This document shows, piece by piece, positions 12,201-56,279 of a stretch of DNA of 64,000 nt; the first letter of the stretch is position 1, and the number at the start of each line of letters is the position of its first letter. The translations under genes and the position numbers were made by a program. The stretch is from the NCBI GenBank assembly GCA_002269645.1, contig NIVC01000369.1, forward strand, positions 159,413-223,412, written 5' to 3'. Origin of the DNA: Macrostomum lignano (lineage: Eukaryota). The notes beneath the pieces are model-generated. The model was given only the letters and a program-made list of their open reading frames with translations. It did no database searches and was not told where the DNA came from.

Positions 12201-14765
12201 TCTGAAAGACCCATAGCTCCAATCTCACCCCTAGATAATCGAGTGTCTATGAGACCCGTAACTCCAATCTCACCCATAGATAATAGAGTGTCTAAGAGAC
12301 CATTCAGAATCTCAAAGATCACAATCGTGATATCTCTGCAATTAAAACTCCATAGTTAAATTCTATTTATTCACCTTGGCAGCCACAATCCTGGCCAGGC
12401 CAAAGTTAAGCGACAGAGCACAGCTAGTGGTCACAATCAGCGCGTCACACTGCAGAGTTGTGATATCGCGCGGCTCAACTCGAAGTGAGCATCGATCGTT
12501 CAATGCCAGCTCAAAATCGTACGGTCCAAGATCGCGAAGGTACTGAGTGTCCACAGGTACAACAGCGCAAGCGCCTTCTACAGCTGGGGCATCTGAAATA
12601 ATTAATATTTTCATTTAGGCCACATATTTGAATTGTTTCAAATGTATGCTTTAAAAAATAACAATTAGTTAGTTACCCTGAGACACTACATCTGGAAATA
12701 GAGGCCTTCTTGAACGACTGGTAGAGCTGATGACAGAAGAGGCTCGGCTCGCTGTGGACGTTGGCTGCTCAGAGGCCCATTTTCTCAAAGCTGACTGAGC
12801 ACAGCTCAGCACTTCTGGATGGCAAGCATGAAGCATTGCCAGCTTTGGTTCTGTTAACTGCATTTCAACTTGATATTGCTCATCTAGATCAACTTTGATT
12901 GGTGCCAGTTCTTGTTCAGTGAATTTTCTAGGCAGTTTAACCTTGCCAGATATGGTTGGAGGCAAGTCAGGCTCCTAAAATAGAAAATAATAGAAAACAC
13001 TTTCAAGACATAAGAACAAAATAAAGATATTTAAAGTCACTGTCTTACCTCTTTTCTTTCTACTATTTTTGCTGGCACAGTATTGTTAATTAGAAATTCA
13101 TCTGATCTTCTTGAAAATGTAACTAAAATGAAAAAAAATTATATAAATTGAGTCTTAAAAACATAAATTACATAAAGCCTTGTTAATATTACTTAGAATT
13201 GTTAGTTTTTAAGATCAAAAGATTAAATTGACCTTATTTAATTTATTTATATATTATACCAATTCTTATGAATCAGTATCTTATCTATAGCTGCTCCCTT
13301 ATCTATAAATATCCTTTTTTATTTGTAGCTAGCCTCCTATTTGTTATTCAAATTGTCAACTAGGGCATATATGTGTAACTGCTGGCTAACCTAGCTAATC
13401 TGGCCACTATAAATTGTGGTAGACTAGGGGTAAGTCTAAAAAATCTCTATCCCAAACAATATATATACTAATTTTGCACTGTTTGTCTGTTTGTCTGTCT
13501 GTCTTTTTGTTGTCTTTGATTTTTTCAAGAACTGTCTGGCCATTTTATCAAATTTGCTTTAAAAATTCCTACTTTTTTGGGGATCATGCATAACATTTTT
13601 TGATGAAAAATTGAATGGGAAGTAGGTCAAATATTCAAAAAATATTTTTTTTGATTTTAATAGGCACTCTGTTTATAAATTTAATTGCTCAGTTTAACCA
13701 TTTAAGCCTCTACTTGGCCAATGTACAGTATAGAATGTATATTTACAATAAAGTTAAGGAGTTTTATGACCCTTTATATAGTAGGCTTAAAATTTGTGGG
13801 GTTGTTTGACTTTCATTATCATTTACCAACCAGTCTAATATAGACAATTGATAAAGAGTGGGTACATAGGGAGGTTAAAAAACTGGCCTAAAATTTATCA
13901 ACCCCCTAAACTGCTTTGATCTTGTTTGTCTAATAATGTGAATGATATGATAATATGATTTGAATGATCATGTGAGTTCCAAATAATCAAATTCAAATTC
14001 AATTGAATTACAACAAAGTAAAAAGGTATTTTAAAAAGAATGAAAAAGAATGATAAACATTTAGCTAGTTAATCATTAAATATTAACCTTTAAAATCACA
14101 AAGTTTTTTATACAAAACTCAAATTCTCTATACACATTATATATCCTATAGTTTAGAAAGCAAAATTTATGCTAGGATTTCCTTTCATCCCTTTAGCCAG
14201 GATTTCCTGGCATACAAGGGTACTTTCTAACATATTTTTTAGTATACATCAATATATATCTCGGCATACATTACACAGCAAAAACATTGTGTTAATGACA
14301 CATTTAATTAGTTCTAGTATACAAATGAGGTCCTGTAATTTTTACCAGCATTAGACCAGCATACACTAATAGTTGTACATAATCCAAACTATGGTGAGCC
14401 AATTGCAAATACAAAATCATTTGACAACCATTTGATAAAATGCTAGTTGACAAAGTGACCAGCACCCATTTGTAGCTGGTATCCCCAATCACCCAATCAG
14501 TAGTAATACTACTACATTCTTACTTAAGGGTTGCAATAATAATGTTGGCAATGCACCGAAGAAAATTCTAATATTGACAGAATTACTCACCTTTGTTCTT
14601 GAAATACAGCTTTGCTAATGTGTGGTCCCCATTGAAAGGTTTGACAACACACAAAAATTCTTGCGAAAAAAGATCTGAGAAGTACGAATGCACAAGTTCC
14701 CAACTGACTTCATTTGGGTTCGAGTGTCGTGAAGATTTAGGAATAGAAATAGTTAAGGTAAACAT
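9229..14765 (-). CDS. Deltex-family E3 ubiquitin ligase (DTX3/DTX3L-like) with an internal macrodomain: N-terminal region - Macro - RING - DTC, about 640 aa, 7 exons
   Basis: Exons 14765-14591, 13122-13049, 12974-12677, 12592-12375, 12126-11387, 10801-10451 and 9295-9229; all GT-AG with matching phases, 1923 nt. DTC motifs GSQPANGTM...PGVQGREHPNPGLPY...VFTIGTSATTG...HHKTRIDGGPEGHGYPDPTYL; RING CELC...C...CVTC...CPLC; macro motifs RDITTLQCDALIV...FGLARIVAAKSG...LPARHILFLALP. The start ATG at 14765 is the least certain part. Confidence 0.88.
9386..10446. repeat. Purine-rich minisatellite (gccagctacagagggg...)n, 17-27-bp variants, in the last intron of the Deltex-like gene
   Basis: Tandem gccagctacagag cores separated by variable G/A spacers. 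Confidence 0.97.
10999..11228 (-). mobile_element. tRNA-derived SINE, copy 2 (in an intron of the Deltex-like gene)
   Basis: Same body as copy 1 (gcatctgaaggctgcgtac...cacccattttacagctgggtgaactgaagcaatgcag...gagaatcgaacccccgacctttcag). Confidence 0.9.
12160..12300. repeat. About 45-bp unit, 3 copies, intronic
   Basis: agaccc(g/a)taactccaatctcacc(t/c)atagataatcgagtgtct repeated. Confidence 0.85.
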
Positions 14766-15544
14766 AGTGCATCAACTATATTCTGGTAACTTGGTATGAA
14801 ATTCAAGACATTGGTGGAATGAGCATGAATCTTAAGCCGAAAACGAAAACTTGTTTCTTAGGAAAAGCAGAATTTAAAATTTGTACAACGCTTTTAAGAC
14901 AGTACGACATAAAATATTATAAGTAACCTAAATATGAACTTATGTGTGTTTCTTAAGATTTATTGAAATGATAGCGTTTAATGAATACTGAAAGTATAAA
15001 CGCATAAAATTTTGTTTTATAGCGTACTTTTTAACGATGCCAGTCTGTCCGGATGATGTTTTCTTTTTTTTCAGCGGAGTTTGTCGAGTGGATTGTGTCG
15101 TGCCATTTCTGCTAACTGTCGTGCTACTAAGAGTGAGACTGGAGTCGGAAATCAGCATAAATTTTTTGGTTAACCGTTGATTTTTCGTGTTTTGACTATT
15201 AGTTCTTCTAATCTTAGCTTTGCCTCAGCACTGACTTAGTACTGTCAAGGCCCTGACACAGGCGACAGAATGGGGCTTGCTATGTCGATACATATAGTAT
15301 AGCTAGGGCCTATACTCCTCCTATAGGCCTATGTAATGTATGATGCGTGCAAAAAGCAAATTTGAATAAAAAAGTAGACTAGGCCCTAGCTTTCTTTCAA
15401 AATGAGCATCCTTGTGTTGCAATTGCAAGGCAAGTTAGGCCTACATTGAATAAAATCAAAATCCTAATTAGGCCCCTAGGCCTAATACATAAGTATAGAG
15501 TATAGTATAGACCCACTACCCCTACCCTACTATACACTATCTAG

Positions 15545-15945
15545 TAGAGGTCGGACGGGATCCCGATCCCGATCCCGAAATCTTGGGATCCCAAGGAAAA
15601 TTGGATTCCCGCGGGACTAGAATCCCAACCCTAAAAAACACGAGAAACGGGAACAGGTCTTTTGATTAAAAATTTATAGAATTAGTGATTACTTGAATGT
15701 ATTTTGTTTTACCTTGTACTCATTACATTATTAATTTGTTGGTTACAAAACTTGTCAATCAATCAATTTTGTTGTATTCTACTTTTTGATCTTGACATTT
15801 TTAGCTCAATTTTGTTTAACTTTATATGGACCTACAAGCTACAATACACTAAAAGACCTGATCCCGAATCCCGATCCCGATCTTGAGAAAAAAAATATTC
15901 CCGATCCCGATCCTGCCCAAAGATTTCAATCCCGTCCGACCTCTT
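15545..15945. mobile_element. About 400-bp non-autonomous hAT-like MITE
   Basis: 16-bp TIRs tagaggtcggacggga / tcccgtccgacctct(t) match 15 of 16. Flanks ctatctag (15537-15544) and ctatctaa (15946-15953) form an 8-bp TSD with one mismatch. Subterminal cccgat repeats occur at both ends. Confidence 0.8.
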
Positions 15946-17013
15946 CTATCTAAGGCCTATCACAAAAAATCCTTGGCTTTATAAATATAATTAAAGAAAC
16001 TTTAATCTTTAGGGCCTATAAAATTAAAATAATTGGCCTACTATAACCCTAAACCATAGGGCCTAGCTAAGATGCATAATAGGCCCAAATTATACCTAAT
16101 CATATAGCATATATAAGCCTATTAACTAGGTCTAGGCCTAGTTAAAATTAAATTCATTCAAGAAAAAAACAATAAAAGAAAATGTCTAAAGCACAATGCC
16201 CTAGCTAGTTTCCTACCTTAAACTATTTTTTGACACTAAATTTGAAACAAATAAACCAAAATAAACCAAATAAGTTTGGTTTATTTTGATAAACTAAAAT
16301 AAGTTTTCTAAAGTATACTTAAGATATATGTAAGTCTTTAAACTACTGATTAAGGTCTTAAAAACAGCATTTATATAGTATGATAATAGGTCACCTTATA
16401 CTATAGAAGAAGTTGCTGAAACACTGCTTAAGATAGGCCCCTAGTAGGTATTAGAAGAACTTGCTGACTGAGATAGAAATCAAAAAGGTCATTACAATCA
16501 GTTTATGACTAGTAGGGCCTAGGCCTATCATTTGTTAAATTTAGATATAAAATTTATGGGAATCGGACATTTTGTCCAAAAACTTTTTGTCTGGGTCTCT
16601 TCATCTGGATGAGAAATTTTATCTAAAGTTCTAAAAGGTATGGCATTTTGTCCAATAGGCACAACATTTTGTCCAAGTCCGATATACAAATAATTTAAAA
16701 TGGTACTAGCATTATAAAATGTACTAGCATTGTAAAATGGCATTAAAACCTCAAGTAGTAAAATGATATATATAGAATGTCATGTTGATGCAAATGTTAA
16801 GTAGGTGATGCATTAGGCCTAGGTTTAACCATTTTTGAAAAATAAATATGGCCCACAGACTTTAGGAAGCTGTTGGGGCTACTTTGTCCTTTTTTGAAAA
16901 GTTGCCACTGATGAGCAATGCATCCCTGGATTGTCTTTGATGCTTTACATTGGTATCGCAGCACAATGCCCTAGTCTAGAAGCTATTTTTGTATCAAAAT
17001 CAACTGAGCCTTA

Positions 17014-19823
17014 GGTAGGGGGTCCAGTGAGAAAATTTTTTTTTTCGAAATCCAAATTTTTAATCATGCCATGTTGTAGTCCTGGATGTTATGAGTGAAA
17101 TGACACCAAACTTTTGAAAATTGATCAAGTAATAAAAAAGTTATGGAGTTTTTCGTTTCAAAAAAATGGTGTTTTTTCCCTATCTGAAATACACTAAAAA
17201 CTGTGCCATTTTTGGGCAAAAAAACATGTTTTGTGCAGTAAAATGTCTGTAACTTTCTTATTTTATAACCAATTTTAGTGCTTTATGTTTTATTTTGTAG
17301 ATTTTTGTTGCTACAACATTATCTGATATTTTTTTCTATATATATACTGTTCTATATATGCAGATATCTGGGGATTAGGACAAAAAGGTGAAGAAAAAAA
17401 ATTTTCTGGAGTACCATTCTTTGGCTTTTTCATGGTATAGTTTCTATTTACCTTATTTTATATTACTTCCATGTCAAAGAAATACTTGTATACTATAATT
17501 AGTAAGATTTTTGACTTTCTACTATAAGTAGTATTTAAATGAGTGACTATTATTTCTATGAAAACGGGTCTTCCAAAGTACCATTCTGGATGTCTATGTT
17601 GTCTAAAAATCTATGTAGCTCGTGTCAATATTAATCTTAACTATCTTCATGCTGGAGTCATTCAAAAGATTTTTGTAGTCCATTTAACAGCTGTAATGAA
17701 TCGATACTGTATTAAGTAATATGTTACTAAATCATGTACTTTCATGTTTGAAGAGACCATGCCCATATTCAGCAATTGATCGAATATAGATTTACAGTTT
17801 ATCTGCATCATTTGATTCATTTACTTGTTCACTGTGTTCACTTTTCAGCGCGATAGCTGTTCGTGGTAATCCAGTCAATTTGTCTGCTATCAAATTCAGC
17901 TGCAGTCAGTGCAGCTCGTCAGCAAATATTTCATCTGCTGTGCTGGCCTTCTCATCGTACTATGAGTCTACTACAGTACTACAACTGTAGCTACTACAAT
18001 CAAGCCAGTCAAGAATGAGACAATATTACAGGGTGGGTTTCAGGTCCTTGACACGAATGTAGGTCGCCATCGTGTCCAGGGTGCTGGAATCAGCCAGCAG
18101 GCAGTCAACAAAACCCGTGTGCGTGCCTTTCCTCTCCAGTATTAAGGTGTCTGCAGCGTCAGTAGCATCTGCACCAGCTGCGGGCGGTACGAACCGGCTT
18201 GGATGACATGGCCTGGCAGCTGGAGACTGGAGTCGCCAACTGCGCAACAACAGTTTGCTGAGATGGGACACCATGTTGGTGATTGGTGAATTGTGACTTG
18301 CTCGTAGCCAATCTAACAATCTTGAGCAATACACAGCGTGATTACATTGTATACTGTAGTATGTACATGCACATGTATGAGAGTATGACAGTCGATTCGT
18401 CTGCTCCTGTTTTCATCCCCAGTCAGTTGTCTCCCAGCAGCCGAATTGGCTGAGAACCCTTTTAGTCAGTTCAGCCTCTACTCAACTGCTTCACTTTAGT
18501 GCTTTAATATTTTTAATTAGCTTGGCAGAATGTCTCAGTCTGCCTGCAGACACTAAACTAGACGCACTTTGTAACCTGTGGAGGCAGTAACAAAAGTGAA
18601 AAAGGTGCGGGACCTGTAGAGGTCAAAGGTGTGCGAGGAAGCTGCTGGCAAGCAGAGTCCCTGGGTCATCTACATGGGCCAGGCACTTGTCTTTCCTGCT
18701 GTGGTCCCAGCTGCAACTGAGCCAGAGTCGACTTCTAGCACGCCAGTTTGCCAACCTTTGCTGCTGCTGTTGCCTGGTCCCCTTCAGAGAAGAGGGCGCC
18801 GACGCAGGCCTTCGAGAAGCTGCGCGCAATCTTCGGGCCCAGCTGGAATGATCAGAGGCGACTGTAGAAAGCTTCACCCATGAGCTTGTCATGCACTCAT
18901 AGTAGATACTGTATAGGCGCAGCATGTCTGGCATCTGGAAGATCTGCAAATAAAAGATGGATTAGTGAGAAATGCATAAGAAATATAGTATATCGTAAGT
19001 CCTGCTATCCCTTTTTAAAGAAAAATTGCATACATGACTTCTTTTCGAATATACAGCCCCTCAATGTACATTTTTCCTATCTCGGTAGTGTATTTTGCAT
19101 GTACACCTGTGCCAATTATGCTTAATAACGTTGGTGCGGCAAAAGTTATCAGTATGTGCCTTTAGGACAAAGATTTTGGCCTGTTTTGCTATCATTTTAT
19201 CGAAGAAACTAACTGGCCATTCTTTTGAGCTTCGAAAATTTCCCGATTTTAATGTCTCTTATGGGGATTTGCATGCATTTTGACGATTTCTGTTAAGCAT
19301 ACTGCGGCAAGAGTTACACTCATCTTGTCTTGCCTAAAAGTTTCATTTTGTCCCTAGAAGTAAGTAGCAAAAAGAATTAGGGTGGCCGCTCTTTCCATTC
19401 AAAAGTTATGGCCATTTTAAATTTTACATGTACATGTACATGTACATATTTTTGAACAAAAAAAGTTCACTTAAAATGACCTCCAGGAAGTTACCTACAC
19501 TCAGTGTGCAAGCATTCTTAGCAGTTATGCACTCATTTACTAAAAAACGAATCCTCCCGATCCCATATTTTCAAGCAAATTCGGCACAGTTTTGAAAATG
19601 TACGAAAATGTACACAATGTTTGACAGGCTGTATCTTTGTAATCGTATGTCCTAAACATGAAAACTATATGTCGTTTAAAACATCTGTTTGCCTTCTTTT
19701 CAATGAATATAAGAACGTGGTCATATCTCAAATATTTAAAAAGTTACATACGTTTAAAGAAGACCACTTTTACCATTTTTCGGTTTTGCACATGCTAAAA
19801 ATAGGCTCGCTGGACACCCTACC
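17014..19823. mobile_element. 2.8-kb non-autonomous TIR DNA transposon with TTA target duplication (PIF/Harbinger-like)
   Basis: Left end ggtagggggtccagtgag versus reverse complement of the right end ggtagggtgtccagcgag: 16 of 18 identical. TTA at 17011-17013 and 19824-19826. AT-rich subterminal regions; no intact transposase ORF found. Superfamily assignment rests on the TSD only. Confidence 0.65.
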
Positions 19824-20675: not shown

Positions 20676-23600
20676 GCAGACTTTTCATCCTTGCTGACAG
20701 AAATTGACCACTACCTTGGTTGTAGTGGTAAGCAGTCAGACAGTGGCGCCAACAACAATGAGCTGGTGCTGTCCCATCGAATTGATGTAAGTCTTGTTGT
20801 TCACTAGACTCCATTGTCTCAATCGCATTTGTCAATTATCAGCTGGTATATCTCTTAGATATGAATCCCTAGATCCCATTTCTTTTTGCAAATCTTATTC
20901 CCACATCCTAGTCTATTCCCAGGTCACATTCTCTTTCCAGATCCCATTCTCTTCCCAGATCCCATTCGCTTCCCAGATCCCATTCTCTTCCCAGGTGCCA
21001 TTCTCTTCTCAGATCTCATTCTCTTCCCAGGTTGAATTCCTTTCCCAGATCCCATTCTCTTATCAGGTTGCATTCATTTCCCAGATCCCATTCTCTTATC
21101 AGGTTGCATTCATTTCCCAGATCCCATTCTCTTCCCAGATCCCATTCTCTTCCCAGATCCGATTCTCTTATCAGGTTGCATTCCTTTCCCAGATCCCATT
21201 CTCTTCCCAGATCCCATTCTCTTATCAGGTTGCATTCTTTTCCCAGATCCCATTCTCTTCCCAGATCCCATTCTCTTATCAGGTTGCATTCCTTTCCCAG
21301 ATCCCATTCTCTTCCCAGATCCCATTCTCTTATCAGGTTGCATTCATTTCCCAGATCCCATTCTCTTCCCAGATCCCATTCTCTTATCAGGTTGCATTCT
21401 TTTCCCAGATCCCATTCTCTTCCCAGATCCCATTCTCTTATCAGGTTGCATTCCTTTCCCAGATCCCATTCTCTTATCAGGTTGCATTCTCTTCCCAGAT
21501 CCCATTCTCTTCCCAGATCTTATTCTCTTCCTAGATCCAATCTCTTCCCAACTCCCCAGTCTCCTTCCAGACCCTAGTCTCTCCCCAGATCCCACCCCCT
21601 CACCTGATACATTTCTTTCTCTCCCCAGATCCCATTGTCTTCATATCTTATTGCATCTCATTATCTTCCAGTATCCCAATCTCCTAGGTTCTAGATCCCA
21701 ATGCCTTCTCTACGCGTCACTTGCAATGCTAATAATATTGATATTCATTGAATTGCTCAACAATCCAGCACTTCTTGGGTCTGCACCCGTCACAACTGGA
21801 GCTGGAGTCCGACGTGACTCGGGATTGTCTGGAAGCACTGCTGGAACTGCTTGTCACCGGCCGGAGCGGAGTGTCTCACTCTCTTCGACGCAGATGCGTA
21901 AAGCTATTGACCCACCTGGGTGAGTTCAGTTACGTTAGATAAAACTTACGTGTTTCTATTTAAGACTACTAAGATTATAATTGGGATTTCGGATTCAAAT
22001 AGTTATTTATATATGATATTATTATAGGGATTTATGGGATTCTAATTCAAGAGATTTTTAAGAGATTCTAATTCGGATGTATAAAATTCTAATTCGAATT
22101 TATGAGATTCTAATTCGGAGTTTTATGAAATTCTAATTTGGATTTATGAGATTCTAATTCGGAATTTTATGAAATTCTAATTCGAATTTATGAGATGCTA
22201 ATTCGGAATTTTATGAAATTCTAATTCGAATTTATGAGATGCTAATTGAGATTTATGCGTTTCTAATAGGGATTCATGGAATTCTAATAGGGATTCATGA
22301 GATGCTAATTGAGATTTATGCGTTTCTAATTGGGATTTTATGTGTTTGTATTGGGGTTTATGAGATTCTAATTTAGATATTTGATATTCTAATAGGAATT
22401 TCTGAGAATCTAATAGGATTTATGAAATTTTAATAGGGATTTATGAGATTCGAAAAGAGATTTATGATAACAGACAGTTATTGCCCATTCCTAATAAATT
22501 TTCAGCAAGCAGTCGAGCGTGGCAGGAGACGCTGCTGGAATCGCACAGCTGCTTGGATCGACTGCCAGTGTTCTTTCATCAGCGTCCATCGCATCCGTTG
22601 CTGACTGACGGCCTGTGCTTGCTGCAGGCGCTCTGCTTTGATTATCATTTTGGTGCTTGGACTGACGGTGACAGGGCTGCGGCTGTTGCCTCCGTGGTTT
22701 CCGTGCTGCTGTTCTATCTCAGGTAGGCTTGTAATATAGCTTCAGGGAGGGGTGGGTAGCCTAAAAACTTCAGGGAGGGGTTTGTAGTATGATAAAACAG
22801 CAAGGTGGGGTTTTGTGGCTTGATAAAACTTCAGGTAGGTGTTTGTAGCCTGATAAAACTTCAGAGAATAGTTATTAGTCTGATAAAACTTCAGGGAGGG
22901 GTTAGTAACTTGATAAAACTTCTGGTAGGGGTTTGTAGCCTGATAAAACTTCAGAGAATAGTTATTAGTCTGATAAAACTTCAGAGAATAGTTATTAGCC
23001 TGATAAAACTTCAGGTAGGGGTTAGTAGCCTGATAAAACTTCAGAGAATAGTTATTAGTCTGATAAAACTTCAGGGAGGGGTTAGTAACTTGATAAAACT
23101 TCTGGTAGGGGTTTGTAGCCTGATAAAACTTCAGAGAATAATTATTAGTCTGATAAAACTTCAGGGAGGGGTTATTAACCTGATAAAACTTCAGGGAGGG
23201 GTTTGTAGCTAGATAAAACTTCAGAGAATGGTTATTAGCCTGATAAAACTTCAGGGAGGGGTTATTAGCTTGATAAAACTTCAGAGAATGGTTATTAGCC
23301 TGATAAAACTTCAGGGAGGGGTTAGTAGCTAGATAAAACTTCAGAGAATAGTTATTAGCCTGATAAAACTTCAGGGAGGGGTTAGTAGCTAGATAAAACT
23401 TCAGAGAATAGTTATTAGCCTGATAAAACTTCAGGGAGGGGTTAGTAGCTAGATAAAACTTCAGAGAATAGTTATTAGCCTGATAAAACTTCAGGGAGGG
23501 GTTAGTAACTTGATAAAACTTCTGGTAGGGGTTTGTAGCCTGATAAAACTTTAGAGAATAGTTATTAGTCTGATAAAACTTCAGGGAGGGGTTAGTAACC

Positions 23601-26600
23601 TGATAAAACTTCAGGGAGGGGTTTGTAGCTAGATAAAACTTCAGAGAATAGTTATTAGCCTGATAAAACTTCAGGGAGGGGTTATTAGCTTGATAAAACT
23701 TCAGAGAATGGTTATTAGCCTGATAAAACTTCAGGGAGGGGTTAGTAGCTAGATAAAACTTCAGAGAATAGTTATTAGCCTGATAAAACTTCAGGGAGGG
23801 GTTAGTAGCTAGATAAAACTTCAGAGAATAGTTATTAGCCTGATAAAACTTCAGGTAGGGGTTAGTAGCCTGATAAAACTTCAGGGAGGGGTTATTAGTC
23901 TGATAAAACTTCAGAGAATAGTTATTAGCCTGATAAAACTTCAGGTAGGGGTTAGTAGCCTGATAAAACTTCAGGGAGGGGTTATTAGCCTGATAAAACT
24001 TCAGGGAATGGTTATTAGCCTGATAAAACTTCAGGGAAGGATTAGTAGCCTGATAAAACTTCAGGGAGGGGTTATTAGTCTGATAAAACTTCAGGGAATG
24101 GTTATTAGCCTGATAAAACTTCAGGGAGGGGTTAGTAGCTTGATAAACTTCAGGGAAGGATTAGTAGCCTGATAAAACTTCAGGGAGGGGTTATTAGTCT
24201 GATAAAACTTCAGGGAATGGTTATTAGCCTGATAAAACTTCAGGGAGGGGTTAGTAGCTTGATAAAACTTCAGGGAGGGATTAGTAGCCTGATAAAACTT
24301 CAGGGAGGGATTAGTAGCCTGATAAAAGTTCAGGGAGGGGTTCGTAGTCTAAGAAAGCTTCAGGGAGGGTTCGTAATTTAGTAAAACTTAATGGATGAAA
24401 GTTTAGTAATCCACATGATTCAAGAAGGGCTTGATATCACAAATTATTAAAAACAGTTTTGTAAAATTACCCTAATTAAAGCTATTTTCAGGGTTTAACA
24501 AACATAATATGCTTAAAAATTACACCGACTAATTACTGAATCTATTAATTGAGTAGTGAATTCAGGGCATGTCGTGAACAGCAATCATAAACATTTATTT
24601 TTTATGATTTTAACTTCCCCAGAAACGACTCGGACATGGCAATCTACGAACCATCGCTTGGCATTCTCGCTTCCCTGCTTCGCGGCAATACCGACTGCCA
24701 GAATTTGGTTCGCAATTCTGACAAGTTTCACTGGCTAAAAAAGCAGCTATTGAAAAATTTGGAGAATCCGTCATTAAGCATTACTATTTATTCAATGTCG
24801 CTAATCTACTATCTTGGTGGGTGTGGTGAACAGCTGTTTAACTGTCCAACCAATTCCTATCAGAGCATTCAAGCTGTGTTTCATGTACTACTGACTGGCA
24901 GTTGCAATAGTAGATGGGCGCCATTGTATTCCGCTAATTTGCTTATTGATATTGCCACTTCTGGCTTCAATCAGGACTTGTTGCCTACTTATGAGTATTT
25001 GCCAGTCTGCTTGGGACCGCTGTTGGATCAGCTGACAGCGGAGAAGCTGCTTCAAGGCAAGGTGAGTGAAATTTTGTGCCTATTTTGTAAAATTGTTCTC
25101 AGATCAGTTTTAATATAATCATCTCAAATAATTAGAACACGATACTAAGATCCCTGTGTCTTCTGACATCCAGTTGCCTCATCCTTGTCTCTTCTTAACT
25201 CCCATTCTCCCAGATCCCATTCTCAATTCCCAGAACCCATTACCTTCTCAGATCCCCTTACCTTCTCAGATCCCCTTACCTTCCCAGATCCCATTATCTT
25301 CCTAGATTCCATTCTCTTCCCAAATCCCATTCTATCTCTCTTCCCAAATCCCATAGATAGAGAAGGATCTAGGGTTATAAAAGGGTCTAGGGTAAGAGAA
25401 GGGCTTAGGGTAAGAGAAGGGTTTAGGGTAAGAGAAGGGCTTAGGGTAAGAGAAGGGCTTAGGGTAAGAGAAGGGTTTAGGGTAAGAGAAGGGTTTAGGG
25501 TAAGAGAAGGGTTTAGGGTAAGAGAAGGGTTTAGGGTAAGAGAAGGGTTTAGGGTAAGAGAAGGGCTTAGGGTAAGAGAAGGGATTAGGTAAGAGAAGGG
25601 TTTAGGGTAAGAGAAGGCTTAGGGTAAGAGAAGGGTTTGGGGTAAGAGAAGGGCTTAGGGTAAGAGAAGGGTTTAGGGTAAGAGAAGGGTTTAGGGTAAG
25701 AGAAGGTTTAGGGTAAGAGAAGGGCTTAGGGTAAGAGAAGGGTTTGGGGTAAGAGAGGGCTTAGGGTAAGAGAAAGGTTTAGGGTAAGAGAAGGGTTTAG
25801 GGTAAGAGAAGGGCTTAGGGTAAGAGAAGGGTTTGGGGTAAGAGAAGGGTTTAGGGTAAGAGAAGGGTTTAGGGTAAGAGAAGGGTTTAGGGTAAGAGAA
25901 GGGCTTAGGGTAAGAGAAGGGCTTAGGGTAAGAGAAGGGTTTGGGGTAAGAGAAGGCTTAGGGTAAGAGAAAGGTTTAGGGTAAGAGAAGGGTTTAGGGT
26001 AAGAGAAGGGTTTAGGGTAAGAGAAGGGTCTAGGGTAATAGAAGGGTCTAGGATAAGCGAAGGGTTTAGGGTAAGAGAAGGGTTTAGGGTAAGAGAAGGA
26101 TTCAGAACTAAAGGATCTAGGGAATTGACGAAATAGGAAACAATTATGTGGGTCAAAGATTTGAGAGTCATCTTAAACTATGGCGATATTAAGAAAGGGT
26201 AAACTGGTCTAGGACCTTCATGAAGTACATGATACGTTGTGCTCGCGCGTCAGCGTTCAATCATAAGCTAGTCTAGGATAATTTGAGTCGTGACGTTTCG
26301 CTGTGGTGACTACGATTTAATTTCTTATCGTTAAATCGAAAGCATCGGTAAGACAGACGGCGAGTTCTGAGGACGCTAAGGCGGCAATTTCGACAGGCAG
26401 ACAATTGACTAGATATATTCGTAATACACCTAAGGGTCACGGTCAGATTCGTGTCTGAGCTTGATCACGAGTTGATAGACAACGGTGTCGAATCGCACCT
26501 ATCAGACGTCAAATTAGTCGTGCAATGTCTTCGAAAGCTTGCATTACAACAAGCGACCCGCGAATAACGTTTGACGACCCGACATTCTTACGAAAAAGTT

Positions 26601-29600
26601 CACAGTTAAGAGGGTCTAGGGGTAATCGATGGGGTTAGAGGGTCTAGGGGTAATCGATGTCAAGAGGGTCTAGGGGTAATCGATGTTAAGAGGGTCTAGG
26701 GGTAATCGATGCATGTCAAGAGGGTATAGGGGTAATCGATGTCAAGAGGGTCTAGGGGTAATCGATGACAAGAGGGTCTAGGGGTAATCGATGTCAAGAG
26801 GGTCTAGGGGTAATCGATGTTAAGAGGGTCTAGGGGTGATCGATGTTAAGAAGATCTAGGGTAATTGATGTTCACAGGGTCTAGGGGTACTCAATGTTAA
26901 GAGGGTCTAGGGATACTCAATGTTAAGAGGGTCTAGGGGTACTCAATGTTAAGAGGGTCTAGGGATAATCGATGCTAGAGGGTATAGGGATAATCGATGT
27001 TAAGAGGGTCTAGGGGTACTCAATGTTAAGAGGGTCTAGGGATAATCGATGCTAGAGGGTATAGGGATAATCGATGTTAAGAGGGTCTAAGGGTACTCAA
27101 TGTTAAGAGGGTCTAGGGATACTCAATGTTAAGAGGGTCTAGGGGTACTCAATGTTAAGAGGGTCTAGGGATAATCGATGCTAGAGGGTATAGGGATAAT
27201 CGATGTTAAGAAAGTCTAAGGGTACTCGATGTTAGAGGATCTAGGGATAATCGATGTTAAGAGGGTCTAGGGGTAATCGATGTTAAGAGGGTCTAGGGGT
27301 AATCGATGTTAAGAGGGTCTAGTGGTAATCGATGTTAAGAGGGTCTATGGTAATCGATGTCAAGAGGGTCTAGGGGTAATCGATGTAAGAGGGTCTAGGG
27401 GTAATCGATGTTAAGAGGGTCTAGGGGTGATCGATGTTAAGAAGATCTAGGGGTAATTGATGTTCACAGGGTCTAGGGGTACTCAATGTTAAGAGGGTCT
27501 AGGGATACTCAATGTTAAGAGGGTCTAGGGGTACTCAATGTTAAGAGGGTCTAGGGATAATCGATGCTAGAGGGTATAGGGATAATCGATGTTAAGAAAG
27601 TCTAAGGGTACTCGATGTTAGAGGATCTAGGGATAATCGATGTTAAGAGGGTCTATGGGTAATCGATGTTAAGAGGGTCTAGGGGTAATCGATGTTAAGA
27701 GGGTCTAGGGGTAATCGATGTTAAGAGGGTCTATGGGTAATCGATGTTAAGAGGGTCTAGGGGTAATCGATGTTAAGAGGGTCTAGGGGTAATCGATGTC
27801 AAGAGGGTCTAGGGGTAATCGATGTTAAGAGGGTCTAGGGGTAATCGATGTTAAGAGGGTCTAGGGGTGATCGATGTTAAGAAGATCTAGGGGTAATTGA
27901 TGTTCACAGGGTCTAGGGGTACTCAATGTTAAGAGGGTCTAGGGGTACTCAATGTTAAGAGGGTCTAGGGGTAATCGATGTCAAGAGGGTCTAGGGGTAA
28001 TCGATGTTAAGAGGGTCTAGGGGTAATCGATGTTGAGAGGGTCTAGGAGTGATCGATGTTAAGAGGGTCTAGGGGTAATCGATCGTAAGAGGGTCTTAGG
28101 GGTAATCGATCGTAAGAGGGTCTTAGGGGTAATCGATCGTAAGAGGGTCTAGGGGTAATCGATCGTAAGAGGGTCTAGGGGTAATCGATCGTAAGAGGGT
28201 CTTAGGGTCTAGCGGTAATAGCACGTTAAGGCGTCTGGACACGTTGGTCGGCGTTACCACGCTAGACTAACCAGCGGTTGACCATTGACTTGCGACGGAG
28301 CTGGATGAACTAACCGATCGCTCGTTCACGACGATACACCCTGCTAGCGTTCTAATAGCGTCCGCGAGAACCTAGATGAAACCGGTTCACACGTCGTAGG
28401 CAAACGACACCGATAACACGGCCTAATCGTTAAAACCGCAGTTATCATTGTTCGGAAATCGGTTAGTCTAACTTCGATCTGAAAGATGACTATGATGACT
28501 CTGATCATCATTGCCGCTTGTAGGTTTCGTTAGAAGTTGTAGCACAAGGGACCGAGCAGATGATCGAACGCCAGAGCAGATAGTAACGATAAGACCCCCT
28601 GGTATATCGTTACGGTCGTAACCACCGAGACCGCGTCGGCACAGGCTGATAACGCCCCTAGTCTAACACCTTACACGGGAAGCATATCACACGGACCGAC
28701 CCGTCTTCGAATATGGGTCCACTCATCATACTTGACACAAACATATAGTAAAGTTAAAATCCACAGTAAACCCACAAACCCTAGTTTCACAGCGGCTGAC
28801 TCCCTAATCCCTAACACAAACCCTAGTTTGTAGCTTCACAGCGGCTGACTCCCTAATCCCTAAAACAAACCCTAGTTTCACAGTGGCTGACTCCGTTATC
28901 CCTAAAACAAACCCTAGTTTCACAGTGGCTGACTCCGTTATCCTAAAACAAACCTAGTTTTACAGCGGCTGACTCCGTTATCCCTAAAACAAACCCTAGT
29001 TTCACAGTGGCTGACTCTGTTATCCCTAAAACAAACCCTAGTTTTACAGCGGCTGACTCCGTAATCCCTAAAACAAACCCTAGTTTCACAGCGGCTGACT
29101 CCCTAATCCCTAGTAACACAAACCCTAATTCACAGTGACTAACTCATCCCTAGTTCTCCTTAGCTTATTTTTACATTGAATTAACATAGATTAGAATTTC
29201 AGAAGGTCTGTGGTACAGAATGTTCAGCAGTGTCACCTTTATAGTCTTTGTTTCCACTGTCTTGGTTTTTGCAGCGTTTCCCGCGAACTGGCCTCACTAT
29301 TGTCTCAGCGTCATCGCTTGGCTTTAGCCTCAACCAATAATGGTATCGCTAGAGGCCCTTCAGCGTTGCCTAGTAACGGTTGCTATGCGGGTAGCATCGG
29401 TCTCGGCGTTGAACTGATGAACGGCCACGGTGTCGCGGTTGGTTCGACAACTTCAACGTCTGCATCTGCCGGCAGCAGCGGTGGCGGCGGCGGTGCAGTC
29501 AACGGTGGACACGAGCTGGGCAGCGGTCAGCTGGATCAGCTGATTAACGATGTTAAAAACAGGCTGAATGTGAGTGCTTTATCTAATCTGTTTCTTTTTC

Positions 29601-31133
29601 ATTGCAACTCAGGTATGTGCTCAGGGGTCAGTGAAATGGGACGAATTGCCTCAAGTAGTGACCCTGGGCGACTCTTTTATCTTTTTAACGACTCATTAGA
29701 CTGTAATGCAACGGAAAGGCGACTGTTGAGTCTCGTGAGTTGCAAAACCGTATAATAGTCGTCTCTGAGTGACCACCCTGAGTCTCTGAGTGACCACCCT
29801 GAGTCTCTTCAGTGACCACTCTGAGTCTCTTGAGTGACCACCCTGAGTCTCTTGAGTGACCACCCTGAGTCTCTTCAGTGACCACTCTGAGTCTCTTGAG
29901 TGACCACTCTGAGTCTCTTCAGTGACCACTCTGAGTCTCTTGAGTGACCACCCTGAGTCTCTTGAGTGACCACTCTGAGTCTCTTGAGTGACCACTCTGA
30001 GTCTCTTCAGTGACCACTCTGAGTCTCTTGAGTGACCACCCTGAGTCTCTTGAGTGACCACCCTGAGTCTCTTCAGTGACCACTCTGAGTCTCTTGAGTG
30101 ACCACTCTGAGTCTCTTCAGTGACCACTCTGAGTCTCTTGAGTGACCACCCTGAGTCTCTTGAGTGACCACCCTGAGTCTCTTGAGTGACCACCCTGAGT
30201 CTCTTGAGTGACCACCCTGAGCCTCTTGAGTGACCACCCTGAGTCTTCAGTGACCACTCTGAGTCTCTTCAGTGACCACTCTGAGTCTCTTCAGTGACCA
30301 CTCTGAGTCTCTGAGTGACCACCCTGAGTCTCTGAGTGACCACCCTGAGTCTCTGAGTGACCACCCTGAGTCTCTTGAGTGACTACCCTGAGTCTCTTCA
30401 GTGACCACTCTGAGTCTCTGAGTGACCACCCTGAGTCTCTGAGTGACCACCCTGAGTCTCTGAGTGACCACCCTGAGTCTCTTGAGTGACTACCCTGAGT
30501 CTCTTGAGTGACCACCCTGAGTCTCTGAGTGACCACCCTGAGTCTTGAGTGACCACCCTGAGTCCTCAGTAAGCATCCTGACTGCTTTCATCTGTACCAG
30601 CTAGTTTTGGGACATTGTCGCCGAAGACTCTTGAAATTATTAATGGTACTATAAGGACGCCAGCATTTCATTTGCATTCATAACCACCCCTCCCTCTAAC
30701 AAAAACTTTTGCACAGCTGAAGGACACTCGAGTCTCAGACCTGCTCACACTGTACGAATCCAAGCTGCAAGCCTGTCAACTCAGCGAAGAATCTTTAATT
30801 GCCTACGCCGCCGCTCAATCCGACGCACTGTCCCGTTGTCAAGCGGTTGCTAGGCGCCAAGCTCAGCGCTCGGCCGCTCTGGAGGCGGAATGCGCCAAAC
30901 TACGCGGAGCTACGGCTGACGCCGAAAAAGCGCAAGAGTCGCTGCGCGTGCTTGAACGCGAGAAAGCGGCAAATGAGGCCAGACTGGTGAAAGAGGTGAA
31001 GTCTGCTCAGCGGAATGCTGAGCGGCTGCAGGCCCTGCTGGACCAGACCGAGCGGGAGAAGCTGGAGATGGCCGAGAGGAATAACCAGCTGAAGAATATC
31101 CTCATGTCCGCCTCTGCTGTGTTTAAGTCTTAG
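20676..31133 (+). CDS. CIP2A: CIP2A (KIAA1524) homolog: armadillo-like N-terminus plus C-terminal coiled coil; two internal exons are present only as complemented sequence
   Basis: Normal exons 20676-20786, 21769-21919, 22506-22722, 24623-25061, 29275-29569 and 30717-31133; complemented exons 26210-26582 and 28236-28719. Recognised segments: PSLGILASLLRGNTDCQNLV...LENPSLSITIYSMSLI...GEQLF...SIQAVFHVLLTG...YSANLLIDI and DTRVSDLLTLYESKL, matching my recollection of human CIP2A. Total 2487 nt is divisible by 3. No ATG in the first identified exon. Confidence 0.85.
20935..21620. repeat. 18-bp-based minisatellite (cccagatcccattctctt)n with interspersed atcaggttgcattc variants, CIP2A intron
   Basis: Direct tandem copies. 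The same unit recurs at 25200-25354 and continues as its complement afterwards. Confidence 0.95.
22020..22460. repeat. Degenerate 21-22-bp tandem repeat (gagattctaattcggatttat-like), CIP2A intron
   Basis: Recurring attctaattcg / ttatgaga motifs. Confidence 0.8.
22735..24370. repeat. 30-bp minisatellite (ctgataaaacttcagggaggggttagtagc)n, CIP2A intron
   Basis: More than 50 copies alternating gggagggg and agaatag variants. Confidence 0.97.
26606..28210. repeat. 26-bp minisatellite (aagagggtctaggggtaatcgatgtt)n inside the complemented block
   Basis: Unit starts at 26662, 26688 and so on; the de-complemented unit is ttctcccagatccccattagctacaa. Confidence 0.95.
28770..29140. repeat. About 44-bp tandem repeat (aaaccctagtttcacagcggctgactccctaatccctaaaac)n
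   Basis: About 8 direct copies; probably still within the complemented block. Confidence 0.85.
29765..30570. repeat. 21-22-bp minisatellite (gagtgaccaccctgagtctct)n, last CIP2A intron
   Basis: Direct tandem copies. Confidence 0.97.
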
Positions 31134-31144
31134 GCGCTGACTGA

Positions 31145-31259
31145 CTGTGTCTGTCTGTCTGGGTCTGTCTGTCTGTCTGTCTGTATGTATGTATGTATGT
31201 ATGTATATCTGTCTGTCTGTCTGTCTGTCTGTCTCTGTCTGTATGTCTGTCTGCCTTCC

Positions 31260-31314
<55 letters not shown>

Positions 31315-31321
31315 GTCTGTA

Positions 31322-31372
<51 letters not shown>

Positions 31373-31373
31373 A

Positions 31374-31412
<39 letters not shown>

Positions 31413-31413
31413 A

Positions 31414-31444
<31 letters not shown>

Positions 31445-31540
31445 GTGTCTGTCTGTCTGTTTTAGTCTCTGTGTCTGTCTGTTTGTTTTAGTCTCTGTGT
31501 CTGTCTGTTTGTTTTAGTCTCTGTGTCTGTGTCTGTCTGT
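31145..31540. repeat. (GTCT)n microsatellite directly after the CIP2A stop codon
   Basis: tgtctgtc array with tatg variants. Confidence 0.97.
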
Positions 31541-33270: not shown

Positions 33271-33309
33271 TTATCAGCAGTTTTATTATTTCGAAAATAA
33301 CTACACTCA

Positions 33310-35932
33310 ATGCATGCTCTTGCGAATATACATCAGTACCAGCCAGGCGTAATGGCTAACAAAGTGCTCTGTCTATTTAACGATTGCAATGAATCGTTTG
33401 AATTAAATAGCAACTGTGGCAACCTTGATACTTCCGTTTTAGAGCAGCATCTGATGGAGGTACATAGTTTAGTTATTGACGCTATTGATAATATTTCCGA
33501 GCTGCCTGAGTAAGTAGATTTTGTTTTTTATAAAGGAATCAGTAGTTGAAATTCATCTAAGTTATGTAAAAATTAAATTAAATTAAAATTAATAATTATT
33601 TTTTAGATACCTGTCTTACTGGCGCAAGTCAATTAGCAGCGAAACCGCATCACAACATTGCTTTGTGTTTCGAAATGAAACTGATAAAGCTGAAGGTAAG
33701 TCTAATAGTGATTTAGTCATTTTAATAATAATATCACCCTCTATTCGTTAAGAAATCGCCCTTAATTCACGGAGAAAATCACCCTTCATTCACTGAGAAA
33801 ATCGCCCTCTATTCACTGAGAAAATCGCCCTCTATTCACTGAGAAAATTGCCCTCTATTCGCTGAGAAAATCGCCCTCTATTCACTATACACCAGGCAGC
33901 CAAAGTGACCCAACTGCTACGACCAAGCAAGAATATTTATTCCTATCGTATGACAATCCAGACGATGCTAAATTGCGCAATAAACTTCACGAAAATCGAT
34001 TGGTACGCGTTTTATCCGATTTATACTACTATTCAGCTGTATCAGTAGAAATATGCGCATTTTTCTGTATTTTTACTAATTTTTTGTAAAAATTTTAGAC
34101 TCGAGTTCTTGAACTATATCAGAAGGAACGATTATCGCTAGAAAAGTTTCCTTGCATCTTTTGCAATGATGTCAACTTGAGTCGGTTGGTTTTTTTAACA
34201 GTTTTGGCTTTCTCAAAATTGTATTACTTGAATATTGGGTGTTTTAATTTTGTGTATTTCGCTTTCAGAACGAAGATATTTGAGCACCTAGCCGAGGAGC
34301 ACAGCTTCTGGTTGGGCGAGCCGGACAATATGGTCTTTGTTGGCGAATTGTTACAGCGTCTCGGCGATATGATTACCAAGTATGCTTTAATTTATGCTGT
34401 GTACAATTGGCTGTTTTGAAATGTTCTGTGTCAAATTTTTGAAGTAAATGAATTTATGAACGATATGTATCATAAATATGTCTACAAAGAGAGAGTTTAC
34501 TACTTCCAAATGTATCGAAATAGCTTTATATCCTAGAAGAAGTTTTATTTGCCAATGTATCGAAAACAACTCTCACAAAGAAGAATTCCATTAGCCAATA
34601 TGCATCGAAAACAAATTTCTACAAGAAAAATGTCTATTAGCCGATATGTAACGAAAACAAATTTCTACTAGAAAAACGTCTATTAGCCGATATGTATCGA
34701 AAATAACTTTCTACTTCTACTAGAAAATTTCTATTAGCCGATATGTATCGAAAACGAATTTTTGCAAGAAGAATGTCTTAGCCGTTATGTATTTAAAATA
34801 AATTTCTACTTCTACTAGAAAAAGTATATGAGCCGATATGTATCGAAAACAATTGTCTGTTAAAGAAAACGGATATCATACCCACTCGCCATGCCAAAAC
34901 ATCCAGCCAAATCTGTCTCTACTGCGAGAAAGAGTTCCGCACCCGGTTCGTGCTCAAGGAGCACATGCGCAAGCGCAATCATCGTCGCATTAAGCCAGAC
35001 AACAGTAGCAAGTACGCCAAGTACTTTATTAGCGCCTATTTAAAACCGAACGGATTTCAACGGATTCGACTATCGATTGGAGCCGATCCAAATTCTTTGG
35101 CAACGCCGTCCTCGTCTGCCGGCTCCAGGGCCGCGTCTGTGGCGGCTTCATCAGAGGATGAAGACAGCTGCGAGGAAGCTGGCGAGACTGATGATGTCGA
35201 AAATGTCGTCGTGTCAAGGTTTGTTTGTTTCAATTTTGTTACAACCTTGTGGCCTAAGAGCGTCGGACTCACGACGTGAAGGTCTGGGGTTCGATTCCTA
35301 ATCCCACTCGAAACAATTAGTGTCCTCGAGCAAGACACTTAACTCTGCATTGCTTCAGTTCACCCAGCTGTAAAATGGGTGCCAGCATTAGCTGGGGTAA
35401 TCGAGGGTGTGTGTGGCGACCCCCCTTGGACTGAACAGCCGTACGCAGCCTTCAGATGCGCCCATTAGGTATTTGGGCAGGTGTAATTAATAATAATAGT
35501 AGGGTTAACGCTTCCAGCTCTTTGCCTTTGTCCAGGAATGCTCAACCAGATGACGACATCGAACTGTACTGCGATCGGCCTTTGCCAACAGCAACCGAGT
35601 CAGTGACTGCAGATGCCGCCTCTGCTGCCACCGAAGCTGCTGAACATCTGACCTGTCCACTGTGCCAACAGACTGGCACAGACCGGCAGCTGCTGGCTCA
35701 TCTATCCTCCAGTCATTCAGTTGATTTACCAGAATTATCTAAGCGTTACAATTTAGACTTTCACCAGCGTCTTCGTTTGCTGGTCTCTATTCGGCGGCGG
35801 CGTTCGAATCAGTCGCCCGACTGTCTAGCTAAATTAGCGGCTGAGTATAATCCTCAAGTAGTTGATGCAGAACGACCAGTTGCTAATGAAGCTGAAGTTG
35901 CTCTGGCTGATTTGTGCGATGATGCTGATTAA
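33310..35932 (+). CDS. ZNF277: Zinc finger protein 277 homolog (C2H2), about 433 aa, 7 exons
   Basis: Exons 33310-33509, 33607-33695, 33896-34002, 34099-34184, 34269-34379, 34907-35218 and 35536-35932; GT-AG, phases match, 1302 nt. Motifs YLSYWRK, CIFC...FEHLAEEHSFWLGEPDNMV, CLYCEKEFR...LKEHMRKRNHRRI and LDFHQRLRLLVSIRR match ZNF277. Confidence 0.88.
35240..35462 (+). mobile_element. tRNA-derived SINE, copy 3 (in ZNF277 intron 6)
   Basis: tgtggcctaagagcg (A-box-like), ggttcgattcc (B-box), gtgtcctcgagcaagacacttaactctgcattgcttcagttcacccagctgtaaaatgggtgccagc; followed by an aat-rich tail near 35485. Confidence 0.9.
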
Positions 35933-36019
35933 ATTGTTGCTCAAGTCTTCTGCCATTCTTTTTTTGCGTATTTCTGTCTTTAATGCGCACTTTTTCTTGA
36001 GAACCACCCCAACTGTTCC

Positions 36020-36580
36020 TGTGAGAATCCCTACATCCAATGTACAACCACTCCCGTGACAACCCCTACTCCCAATGTACACCCGCTCCCATGAGAACTC
36101 CTATCCCCAATGTACACCCACTCCCATGACAACCCCTACCCCCACTGTACGCCCACTCCCGCGAGAACCCCTACCCCCACTGTACGCCCACTACCGCGAG
36201 AACCCCTACCCTCCAATGTACACCTACTACCGCGGGAACCCCTACCGCCCAATGTACACCCACTCCCGTGACAATTTCTACCCCTCAATGTACACCCACT
36301 CCCGCGAGAACCCCTACCCCAATGTACACCCACTCCCGTGACAATTTCTACCCCTCAATGTACACCCACTCCCGCGAGAACCCCTACCCCCAATGTACAC
36401 CCACTCCCGTGACAATTTCTACCCCTCAATGTACACCCACTCCCGCGAGAACCCTACCCCCAATGTACACCCACTCCCGTGACAATTTCTACCCCTCAAT
36501 GTACACCCACTCCCGCGAGAACCCCTACCCCCAATGTACACTCACTCCCGTGAGAATCTCTACCCTCAATGTACACTAGT
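36020..36580. repeat. About 39-bp minisatellite (caatgtacacccactcccgcgagaacccctacccc-like)
   Basis: Direct copies between ZNF277 and UGP2. Confidence 0.93.
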
Positions 36581-36878
36581 AAAGTTACCCCCCCCCATCA
36601 CGTAACACTTATCAGTCCTCAGCTAAGGAAACCTGTGTTGGTTTGTGTTTGCAAATTGCTACAGAATCGATGCAGATGCACTACTCTCGAAAACTGGAAA
36701 TAGATTTATAAAAAAACAACTTTGTTCTTGCGCTGTTTTTTTTGTAGTTTTTACTTCATTATTTGATTAAATTTGATGTAATTCGCTACCAAACTTATCA
36801 CTCTTCAGAAGCAAGGCTTGAAGTACTTAATTTCAAACTTGATAAATAAATCAAAGAACTGAATTACCAGCATAAGTC

Positions 36879-39724
<2,846 letters not shown>

Positions 39725-44552: not shown

Positions 44553-56279
<11,727 letters not shown>

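Follow-up and report, generated by a model that had tools for sequence, protein, structure and literature searches.

The CIP2A locus and its homeologs

The 64,000-nucleotide window analysed here, a stretch of the genome of the flatworm Macrostomum lignano (GenBank contig NIVC01000369.1, assembly Mlig_3_7, GCA_002269645.1), contains no Ns and carries a gene that, judged by its sequence, is a member of the CIP2A family; within this gene an interval of 3,831 nt (25355-29185) is written as the unreversed, base-for-base complement of the true sequence. The species is a neopolyploid, its genome being made up of three subgenomes (PMC10733133). The gene in the window is one of three homeologous CIP2A genes: its own locus (L002, NIVC01000369.1:169487-194449, protein PAA84525.1) has homeologs on NIVC01000368.1 (L001, protein PAA84545.1 = P0002) and on NIVC01000031.1 (L003, protein PAA93250.1 = P0018), and introns 4-6 together with exons 5 and 6 fall within the interval once it is repaired, that is, complemented in place. 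The two homeologous loci resemble the window copy in the gene itself, its exon-intron structure, its intronic arrays and its neighbours, but they are in normal sense throughout and annotated at full length, whereas the window copy has the complemented block and a partial annotation of 300 amino acids (aa). The coordinates of the features are collected in Table 1.

Table 1. Features of the CIP2A homolog and of the complemented block, in window coordinates (exons numbered over the part of the gene seen)
Feature	Position	Strand	Remarks
Upstream normal exons	20676-20786, 21769-~21920, ~22506-22723	+	Approximate limits from tblastn
Normal exon 4	24623..25061	+	Ends in phase 0, caaggcaag/gtgagt
Complement-in-place block	25355..29185	.	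NIVC01000369.1:184767-188597; each base replaced by its Watson-Crick partner, order kept
Left junction	25354..25355	.	Inside 18/24-mer tandem array, ...cccat/agatagag...; the complement carries the array on in register
18-mer array, written as complement	25359..26099	.	AGAGAAGGGTTTAGGGTA, 41 copies (TRF); true unit TCTCTTCCCAAATCCCAT
Hidden exon A (exon 5)	26210..26582	+	373 nt; readable only after complementing in place
26-mer array, written as complement	26605..28207	.	62 copies; true unit CAATTCTCCCAGATCCCCATTAGCTA; from TRF and L003 sequence
Hidden exon B (exon 6)	28236..28719	+	484 nt with 160 intact codons; like exon A, readable only when complemented in place
42-mer array, written as complement	28774..29145	.	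True form GGGATCAAAGTGTCGCCGACTGAGG...; from TRF and homeolog alignment, the orientation not being decidable from the window alone
Right junction	29185..29186	.	Unique intron sequence, ...attaac/atagattag..., 89 nt upstream of exon 7
Normal exon 7	29275..29570	+	VSRELASLL...DVKNRLN; without GenBank annotation at this locus
Normal last exon	30717..31133	+	Putative coiled-coil tail LKDTRVSDLLTLYESKL...AVFKS, stop at 31131-31133; without annotation at this locus

Limits and nature of the block

The limits of the block were set by aligning the window, both as deposited and as complemented, to the homeologs. The deposited window aligns to L001 and L003 up to 25354 and again from 29186, and the block between them, as deposited, aligned in neither orientation; the complemented window aligns plus/plus to both homeologs over all of 25355-29185. 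After repair, the window matches L003 in a single high-scoring segment pair (25208-31206 versus 13421-19395, 98.2% identity, 6,034 columns) that passes through both junctions. The locus L002 is an exact substring of the window from position 10075, block included. The complement of 25355-29185 taken in place is an exact recovery of the true sequence, and what was deposited is equivalent to minus-strand sequence that has been reversed without being complemented.

Both junctions are exact to the base: no base is gained or lost at either, and there is no indel within 50 nt of them in the comparison of the repaired window with L003. At the left junction L003 reads ...cccattctatctcttcctagatccc..., exactly as the complement predicts, and the closest differences from L003 lie at 25225 and 25588. 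At the right junction the match of the complement to L001 ends at 17102 and that of the deposited strand begins at 17103, with 98% identity across the junction after repair; here the closest differences from L003 are at 29129 and 29205.

The left junction falls in the middle of a tandem array. The 18-mer intron repeat TCTTCCCAGATCCCATTC is present in its normal form at 25208-25354, where Tandem Repeats Finder (TRF) reports the array TCCCAGATCCCATTATCT at 25208-25331, and in complement form from 25355 onwards, the repeat text ...tcttcccaaatcccat ending at 25354 and continuing as agatagagaagg..., its complement in the same register. The complement form of the 18-mer has 35 matches, all of them inside the block, where 0.01 would be expected by chance; the normal-form family also fills another intron (20932-21507). 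Read directly, L003 has the continuation of the 18-mer array, the 26-mer array and the 42-mer array all in normal sense. An earlier reading of the window, made from its letters alone and hereafter called the sequence-only reading, had reported this flip into the complement at 25355, which the sequence, TRF and the match counts bear out, and had described 25355-29150 as a complement and not a reverse complement. The nature of the block and its left end were given correctly; its right end lies 35 nt further on, at 29185, so that the block includes the 42-mer array and 40 more bases.

Two other approaches were less useful. The sharing of k-mers with the rest of the window was informative for the 18-mer array only, the 26-mer and 42-mer arrays having no other copies in the window. 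A strand-symmetric Markov log-likelihood scan of the 64 kb found 25251 to about 29000 as its sole complement-like stretch, but it is flat over the 42-mer array, so that the right edge could not be placed, and it gave a false positive in L001 (17500-19650, flagged at 17.5-19.2 kb), a normal-sense 21-mer array; the complement and the reverse strand of this array are alike at about 70%. The scan is not specific in arrays and was dropped as evidence.

Two exons hidden in the block

In-place complementation of the block yields two exons with long open frames, one of 373 nt bounded by ccag and gtaaga (exon A) and one of 484 nt bounded by cag and gtgagt (exon B). The corresponding exons of L003, read directly in normal sense, are 373 and 484 nt long. 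The exon before the block ends at 25061 in phase 0, the one at 29275 lacks a base of its first codon, and the 857 nt of the two hidden exons (373+484) reconcile both. PAA84545.1 and PAA93250.1 both read ...LLQGK/ILEVLHVLCNHERSRK...KLLGY/LCNQPQWCDL...KLIPS/VSRELASLL... or, over longer segments, LLQGK/ILEVLHVLCNHERSRKLVFDQ...ERNVVRLGAYCKLLGY/LCNQPQWCDL...GQKLIPS/VSRELASLL, with both exon peptides exactly between the peptides of the normal exons.

In a tblastn search with PAA93250.1, 570 of its 828 residues are found in the deposited window, residues 334-591 being absent, versus 820 of 828 once the block is repaired; identity to this protein is 100% over 160 residues for exon B and 98% over 105 residues for exon A. 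Splice sites, open frames and protein identity are found for the block in the complement-only reading alone. The length of open reading frames (ORFs) was discounted as evidence, repeats giving ORFs of 170-260 codons in all four transformations and all twelve readings; it is the homology and the alignment to the homeologs that make the hidden exons more than a product of chance.

Exon A is split over frames, with ILEVLHVLCNTS in frame 0 (which runs into stops), FVAILSAAQ... in frame 1, and frame 0 again before the donor. These changes of frame are due to three indels relative to the homeologs (26240 delC, 26244 insGC and 26555 delA), the net effect of which is 0. The L001 protein agrees with that of L003 at all three sites, and the window copy is therefore the odd one out; the true peptide of exon A starts ILEVLHVLCNHERSRKLVFDQ... 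A 16-nt "intron" (GTTAGT...CAG) was considered for the first change of frame and rejected as too short and, given the homeolog sequence, unnecessary.

The sequence-only reading had placed exons of 373 and 484 nt in the block, had counted 160 stop-free codons in the second, had held that only these lengths reconcile the flanking phases, and had noted that a six-frame search would miss both exons. The in-place complement, the exon sizes of L003 and the homeolog proteins bear out the first of these claims, and the others agree with the protein identity of exon B, the phases and the tblastn counts given above. For exon A, both the exon and its limits stand, but it cannot be read in a single frame as had been supposed, the three indels shifting the frame.

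Membership in the CIP2A family

The repaired translation matches human CIP2A (PDB 5UFL_A, E = 4.6e-17, 64.9 bits) collinearly from the normal exon through A to B (query 6-297 versus 158-451) and scores 59.7 bits against the Pfam family CIP2A_N (PF21044), for which the cut-off is 26.3. The normal exon alone reaches 40.8 bits against 5UFL_A, to which the hidden exons add about 24 bits; by themselves the hidden exons are below detection against PDB and Pfam. When the exon A peptide is compared directly with human CIP2A (approximately residues 318-411), z is 7.4 and none of 2000 shuffles reaches the score, and among the twelve possible readings of the block compared with CIP2A the complement reading scores 63 and the others at most 40, which is also the best score of the reverse complement. 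PAA93250.1 matches CIP2A_N at 64 bits (residues 53-455 versus 33-431 of the 544 profile positions), as against 43.7 bits for the truncated protein P0019. The assignment of the two exons to a CIP2A homolog, as proposed in the sequence-only reading, is borne out: the homeolog proteins that carry both peptides match CIP2A_N and 5UFL.

The repaired gene and its homeologs are like human CIP2A (KIAA1524) in being collinear with it over CIP2A residues 51-451 (E = 2.6e-18 for PAA93250.1 versus 5UFL) and in passing the Pfam cut-off. The flatworm proteins also have a predicted alpha-helical C-terminal tail that resembles coiled-coil proteins, with only weak matches to such proteins (HIP1, E = 0.06; SCOC, E = 0.4). 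They differ from the human protein in being very divergent, with about 30% identity to other animal CIP2A proteins, in being shorter (828 aa or more, 5'-partial, versus 905 aa in human), and in having a low-complexity Gly/Ser insert before the tail.

Annotation of the three copies

The GenBank coding sequence (CDS) at this locus (BOX15_Mlig019181g1, PAA84525.1, 300 aa, flagged partial, annotated gene start 20075) carries the diagnostic residues of the window's own copy. Its end, ...LGPLLDQLT, corresponds to window position 25037, inside exon 4, 24 nt short of the donor and 318 nt short of the block, and no gene is called in GenBank over exons 7-8 at this locus. Both homeologs have gene models of 828 aa. 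A HMMER search with the normal exon (24624-25061) finds PAA84545.1 at 100% identity, and this protein clusters with PAA93250.1 (828 aa), PAA84525.1 (300 aa, partial) and A0A1I8GSB4. The annotation would have halted in exon 4 because transcripts cannot be aligned to the complement-only block; the truncated CDS is what transcript-to-genome annotation on an already corrupted sequence would give, and is also indirect evidence that the block was in the assembly as submitted.

A second assembly made from the same PacBio data, ML2, has gene models that carry the hidden peptides. A protein word search with these peptides had UniProt A0A1I8FH03 (M. lignano) as its sole match, with 52 of 52 residues of exon B identical; the same search with the normal exon gave no match. 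Other segments of A0A1I8FH03 map in order to the window's normal exons, and its exon B segment can be placed only on the complemented block. Both A0A1I8FH03 and A0A1I8GSB4, apparently models of the ML2 assembly, carry the exon B peptide, and A0A1I8GSB4 carries most of exon A as well, from which it follows that exons A and B are readable in normal sense in ML2. These two entries (P0001 and P0020, which belong to an earlier M. lignano annotation) are frameshifted chimeras of real and out-of-frame segments, and their automatic names ("DDT domain-containing" and "DUF2428 domain-containing") are misleading for a CIP2A homolog.

Alternative explanations

There is very little doubt that the block is a software artefact in the handling of the Mlig_3_7 sequence and not a property of the DNA. 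The strands of DNA pair antiparallel, and we know of no route of replication, repair or recombination that swaps a strand for its parallel complement. No biological process would yield a parallel complement, yet splice signals and an unbroken frame of 160 codons are preserved in the block in a form useless to any cell; it is this combination that argues for an artefact and against biology. That the plus strand of the animal's DNA truly is the ancestral plus strand, complemented but not reversed, can claim in its favour that the sequence stands in the public record and that the case against it makes no use of raw reads, but its chances are negligible: besides the antiparallel pairing of strands, two homeologs, one of them 98% identical, are in normal form, the ML2 models from the same reads carry the peptide of exon B and in one case most of exon A, and a reading that is unusable to the cell would be expected to have undamaged splice sites, 160 open codons and 100% protein identity only if the complement were the true DNA. 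The suggestion made in the sequence-only reading, that an artefact and not real DNA is at issue, is supported by these normal-form homeologs and by the confinement of the coding signals to the complement reading. An ordinary inversion, that is, a reverse complement of biological origin or from a mis-oriented contig, would account for the change of sign in GC skew at the left edge of the block, but it predicts a minus-strand alignment to the homeologs in reversed order, which was not found for the deposited block; the complement is collinear plus/plus with them, and the reverse-complement reading has no CIP2A-like frames (best score 40 versus 63), so that an ordinary inversion is excluded.

Two further alternatives accept the artefact and concern its date. 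Corruption after submission, in a copy of the record that was the source of the window as well as of L002, is consistent with the two having possibly come from one download, in which case their identity is not independent confirmation; it is nevertheless very unlikely, the GenBank CDS being truncated in exon 4 and partial where the homeologs have their full 828 aa, as would fit mapping on an already corrupted sequence, and the indels of exon A fitting a sequence that was out of reach of polishing reads. Somewhat better placed, though we judge it the less probable course, is the same artefact arising after polishing (e.g., in SSPACE scaffolding or in file handling), with the exon A indels being genuine mutations in a homeolog undergoing decay. 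In its favour, the surplus of single-base deletions in the block falls short of significance (p = 0.06), and decay can affect redundant gene copies of a neopolyploid (PMC10733133). Set against this, the copy is otherwise nearly identical to L003, the main alignment having only 4 mismatches over the 2,168 nt that it covers beyond the block, and all its other exons are intact. It is improbable that three indels that disrupt the frame, all of them in the 857 coding nt of the block, are real (about 0.04 from position alone), and homopolymer contractions such as these deletions are characteristic of PacBio consensus sequence before polishing.

Origin of the fault

The published assembly pipeline consisted of Canu 1.4 on PacBio reads, followed by Pilon 1.20 (polishing with Illumina and RNA-seq reads) and SSPACE 3.0 scaffolding, with no gap filler described (PMC5730564). 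According to the explanation favoured here, a 3,831-nt interval of an otherwise correct contig would have been written by software as its complement, in unreversed order, after which no read or transcript could be aligned to it, and the block would probably have been missed by short-read polishing. Such an escape from polishing would account for its homopolymer deletions and for the three indels that break the frame of exon 5: relative to L003 the block has lost single bases in 13 places, mostly through contraction of homopolymers, versus 4 such deletions in 3,105 nt outside it (p = 0.06), and the block's exons have three indel events in 857 nt, in comparison with gap-free tblastn matches to PAA93250.1 over the fully coding normal exons. 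We infer a software fault that either preceded Pilon or was independent of it. Because the junctions are base-perfect, an interval of an already contiguous layout was apparently rewritten.

Several points weigh against this account. The excess of residual errors is only marginal, and near-identical homeologs also impede polishing elsewhere, so that a date before Pilon is uncertain. None of the steps named in the published methods would obviously rewrite an internal interval, and the base-perfect junctions speak against a simple join of separately assembled contigs. A literature search on complement-only artefacts found no description of this type of artefact. The absence of DNA molecules with the deposited sequence is concluded, very strongly, from chemistry and from the homeologs, not from raw reads. 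The gap-filling step that the sequence-only reading had put forward as the likely cause is not established, there being no gap filler in the published pipeline and no imperfection at the junctions.

That other genes of the assembly would be corrupted too had been implied in the sequence-only reading; no second complement-form interval was found in the approximately 30 kb of the window overlapped by homeolog loci, nor in the flagged stretch of L001 that was checked. The low-complexity, GTCT-type sequence at 2050-2677 matches L001 (20252-20910) at about 70% both as deposited (minus) and as the complement (plus); it is an array nearly symmetric under these operations and not a second corrupted block. 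It is possible, and can be proposed only tentatively, that the block in the CIP2A homolog is one case of a recurrent, undescribed fault in tools of the Canu 1.4/Pilon 1.20/SSPACE 3.0 era or in custom glue code. If so, more complement-only blocks could be present in the 764 Mb of Mlig_3_7, and perhaps in other public assemblies, silently removing exons from annotations. An assembly-wide screen should use alignment and not composition, because the Markov test errs on arrays.

Tandem arrays and neighbouring genes

Almost all introns of the CIP2A homolog and its 3' flank (20790-24400, 29760-30560 and 31140-31530) are taken up by long tandem arrays, which include an 18-mer, a ~30-mer ("taaaacttcaggg..."), a 21-mer ("gagtctctgagtgaccaccct") and a GTCT microsatellite; one 18-mer family occupies two different introns. 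In intron 4 the window has about 45 bases more than L003 after the donor (window 25082-25207 versus L003 13340-13420), a part that could not be aligned, and the final codon of exon 4 is aag in the window and aaa in L003, a synonymous difference. Both differences lie outside the block and look like real differences between homeologs.

Upstream of the CIP2A homolog, on the minus strand, is a gene for a DTC-domain protein (approximately 10075-14765), and downstream (33300-39033, plus strand) are two genes, for a zf-C2H2_2 protein that is 430 aa long in the homeologs and for UDP-glucose pyrophosphorylase (UDPGP, 358.7 bits). The order of the DTC, CIP2A, zf-C2H2_2 and UDPGP genes is conserved in all three homeologous loci. 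Farther downstream, on the minus strand, an ORF of 769 codons (48099-50405) with aspartyl protease, reverse transcriptase, RNase H and integrase zinc-binding domains is, from its predicted domains, the pol gene of a Ty3/gypsy-type long terminal repeat (LTR) retrotransposon.

Significance

Orientation misassemblies (inversions) are the known artefacts most readily compared with the block: in both cases there is an error in the handling of strand or orientation, with sharp junctions, often at repeats, and broken gene models across them. An inverted segment, however, is still real DNA that is found by aligners and by six-frame translation, whereas this block was complemented but not reversed; neither of its strands matches anything, and BLAST, read mappers and gene finders all miss it. 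Errors of this type would surface only as an interval of zero coverage or through complement-only or reverse-only translation, and the value of the finding lies in quality control of assembly and annotation.

The block itself has no biological importance, and it is all but certain that the CIP2A homeolog at this locus is normal in the animal. Because of the block, one of the three CIP2A copies of M. lignano is annotated as a 300-aa fragment instead of a protein of about 828 aa, and this truncated copy could mislead analyses of copy number, homeolog retention or pseudogenisation in a neopolyploid model.

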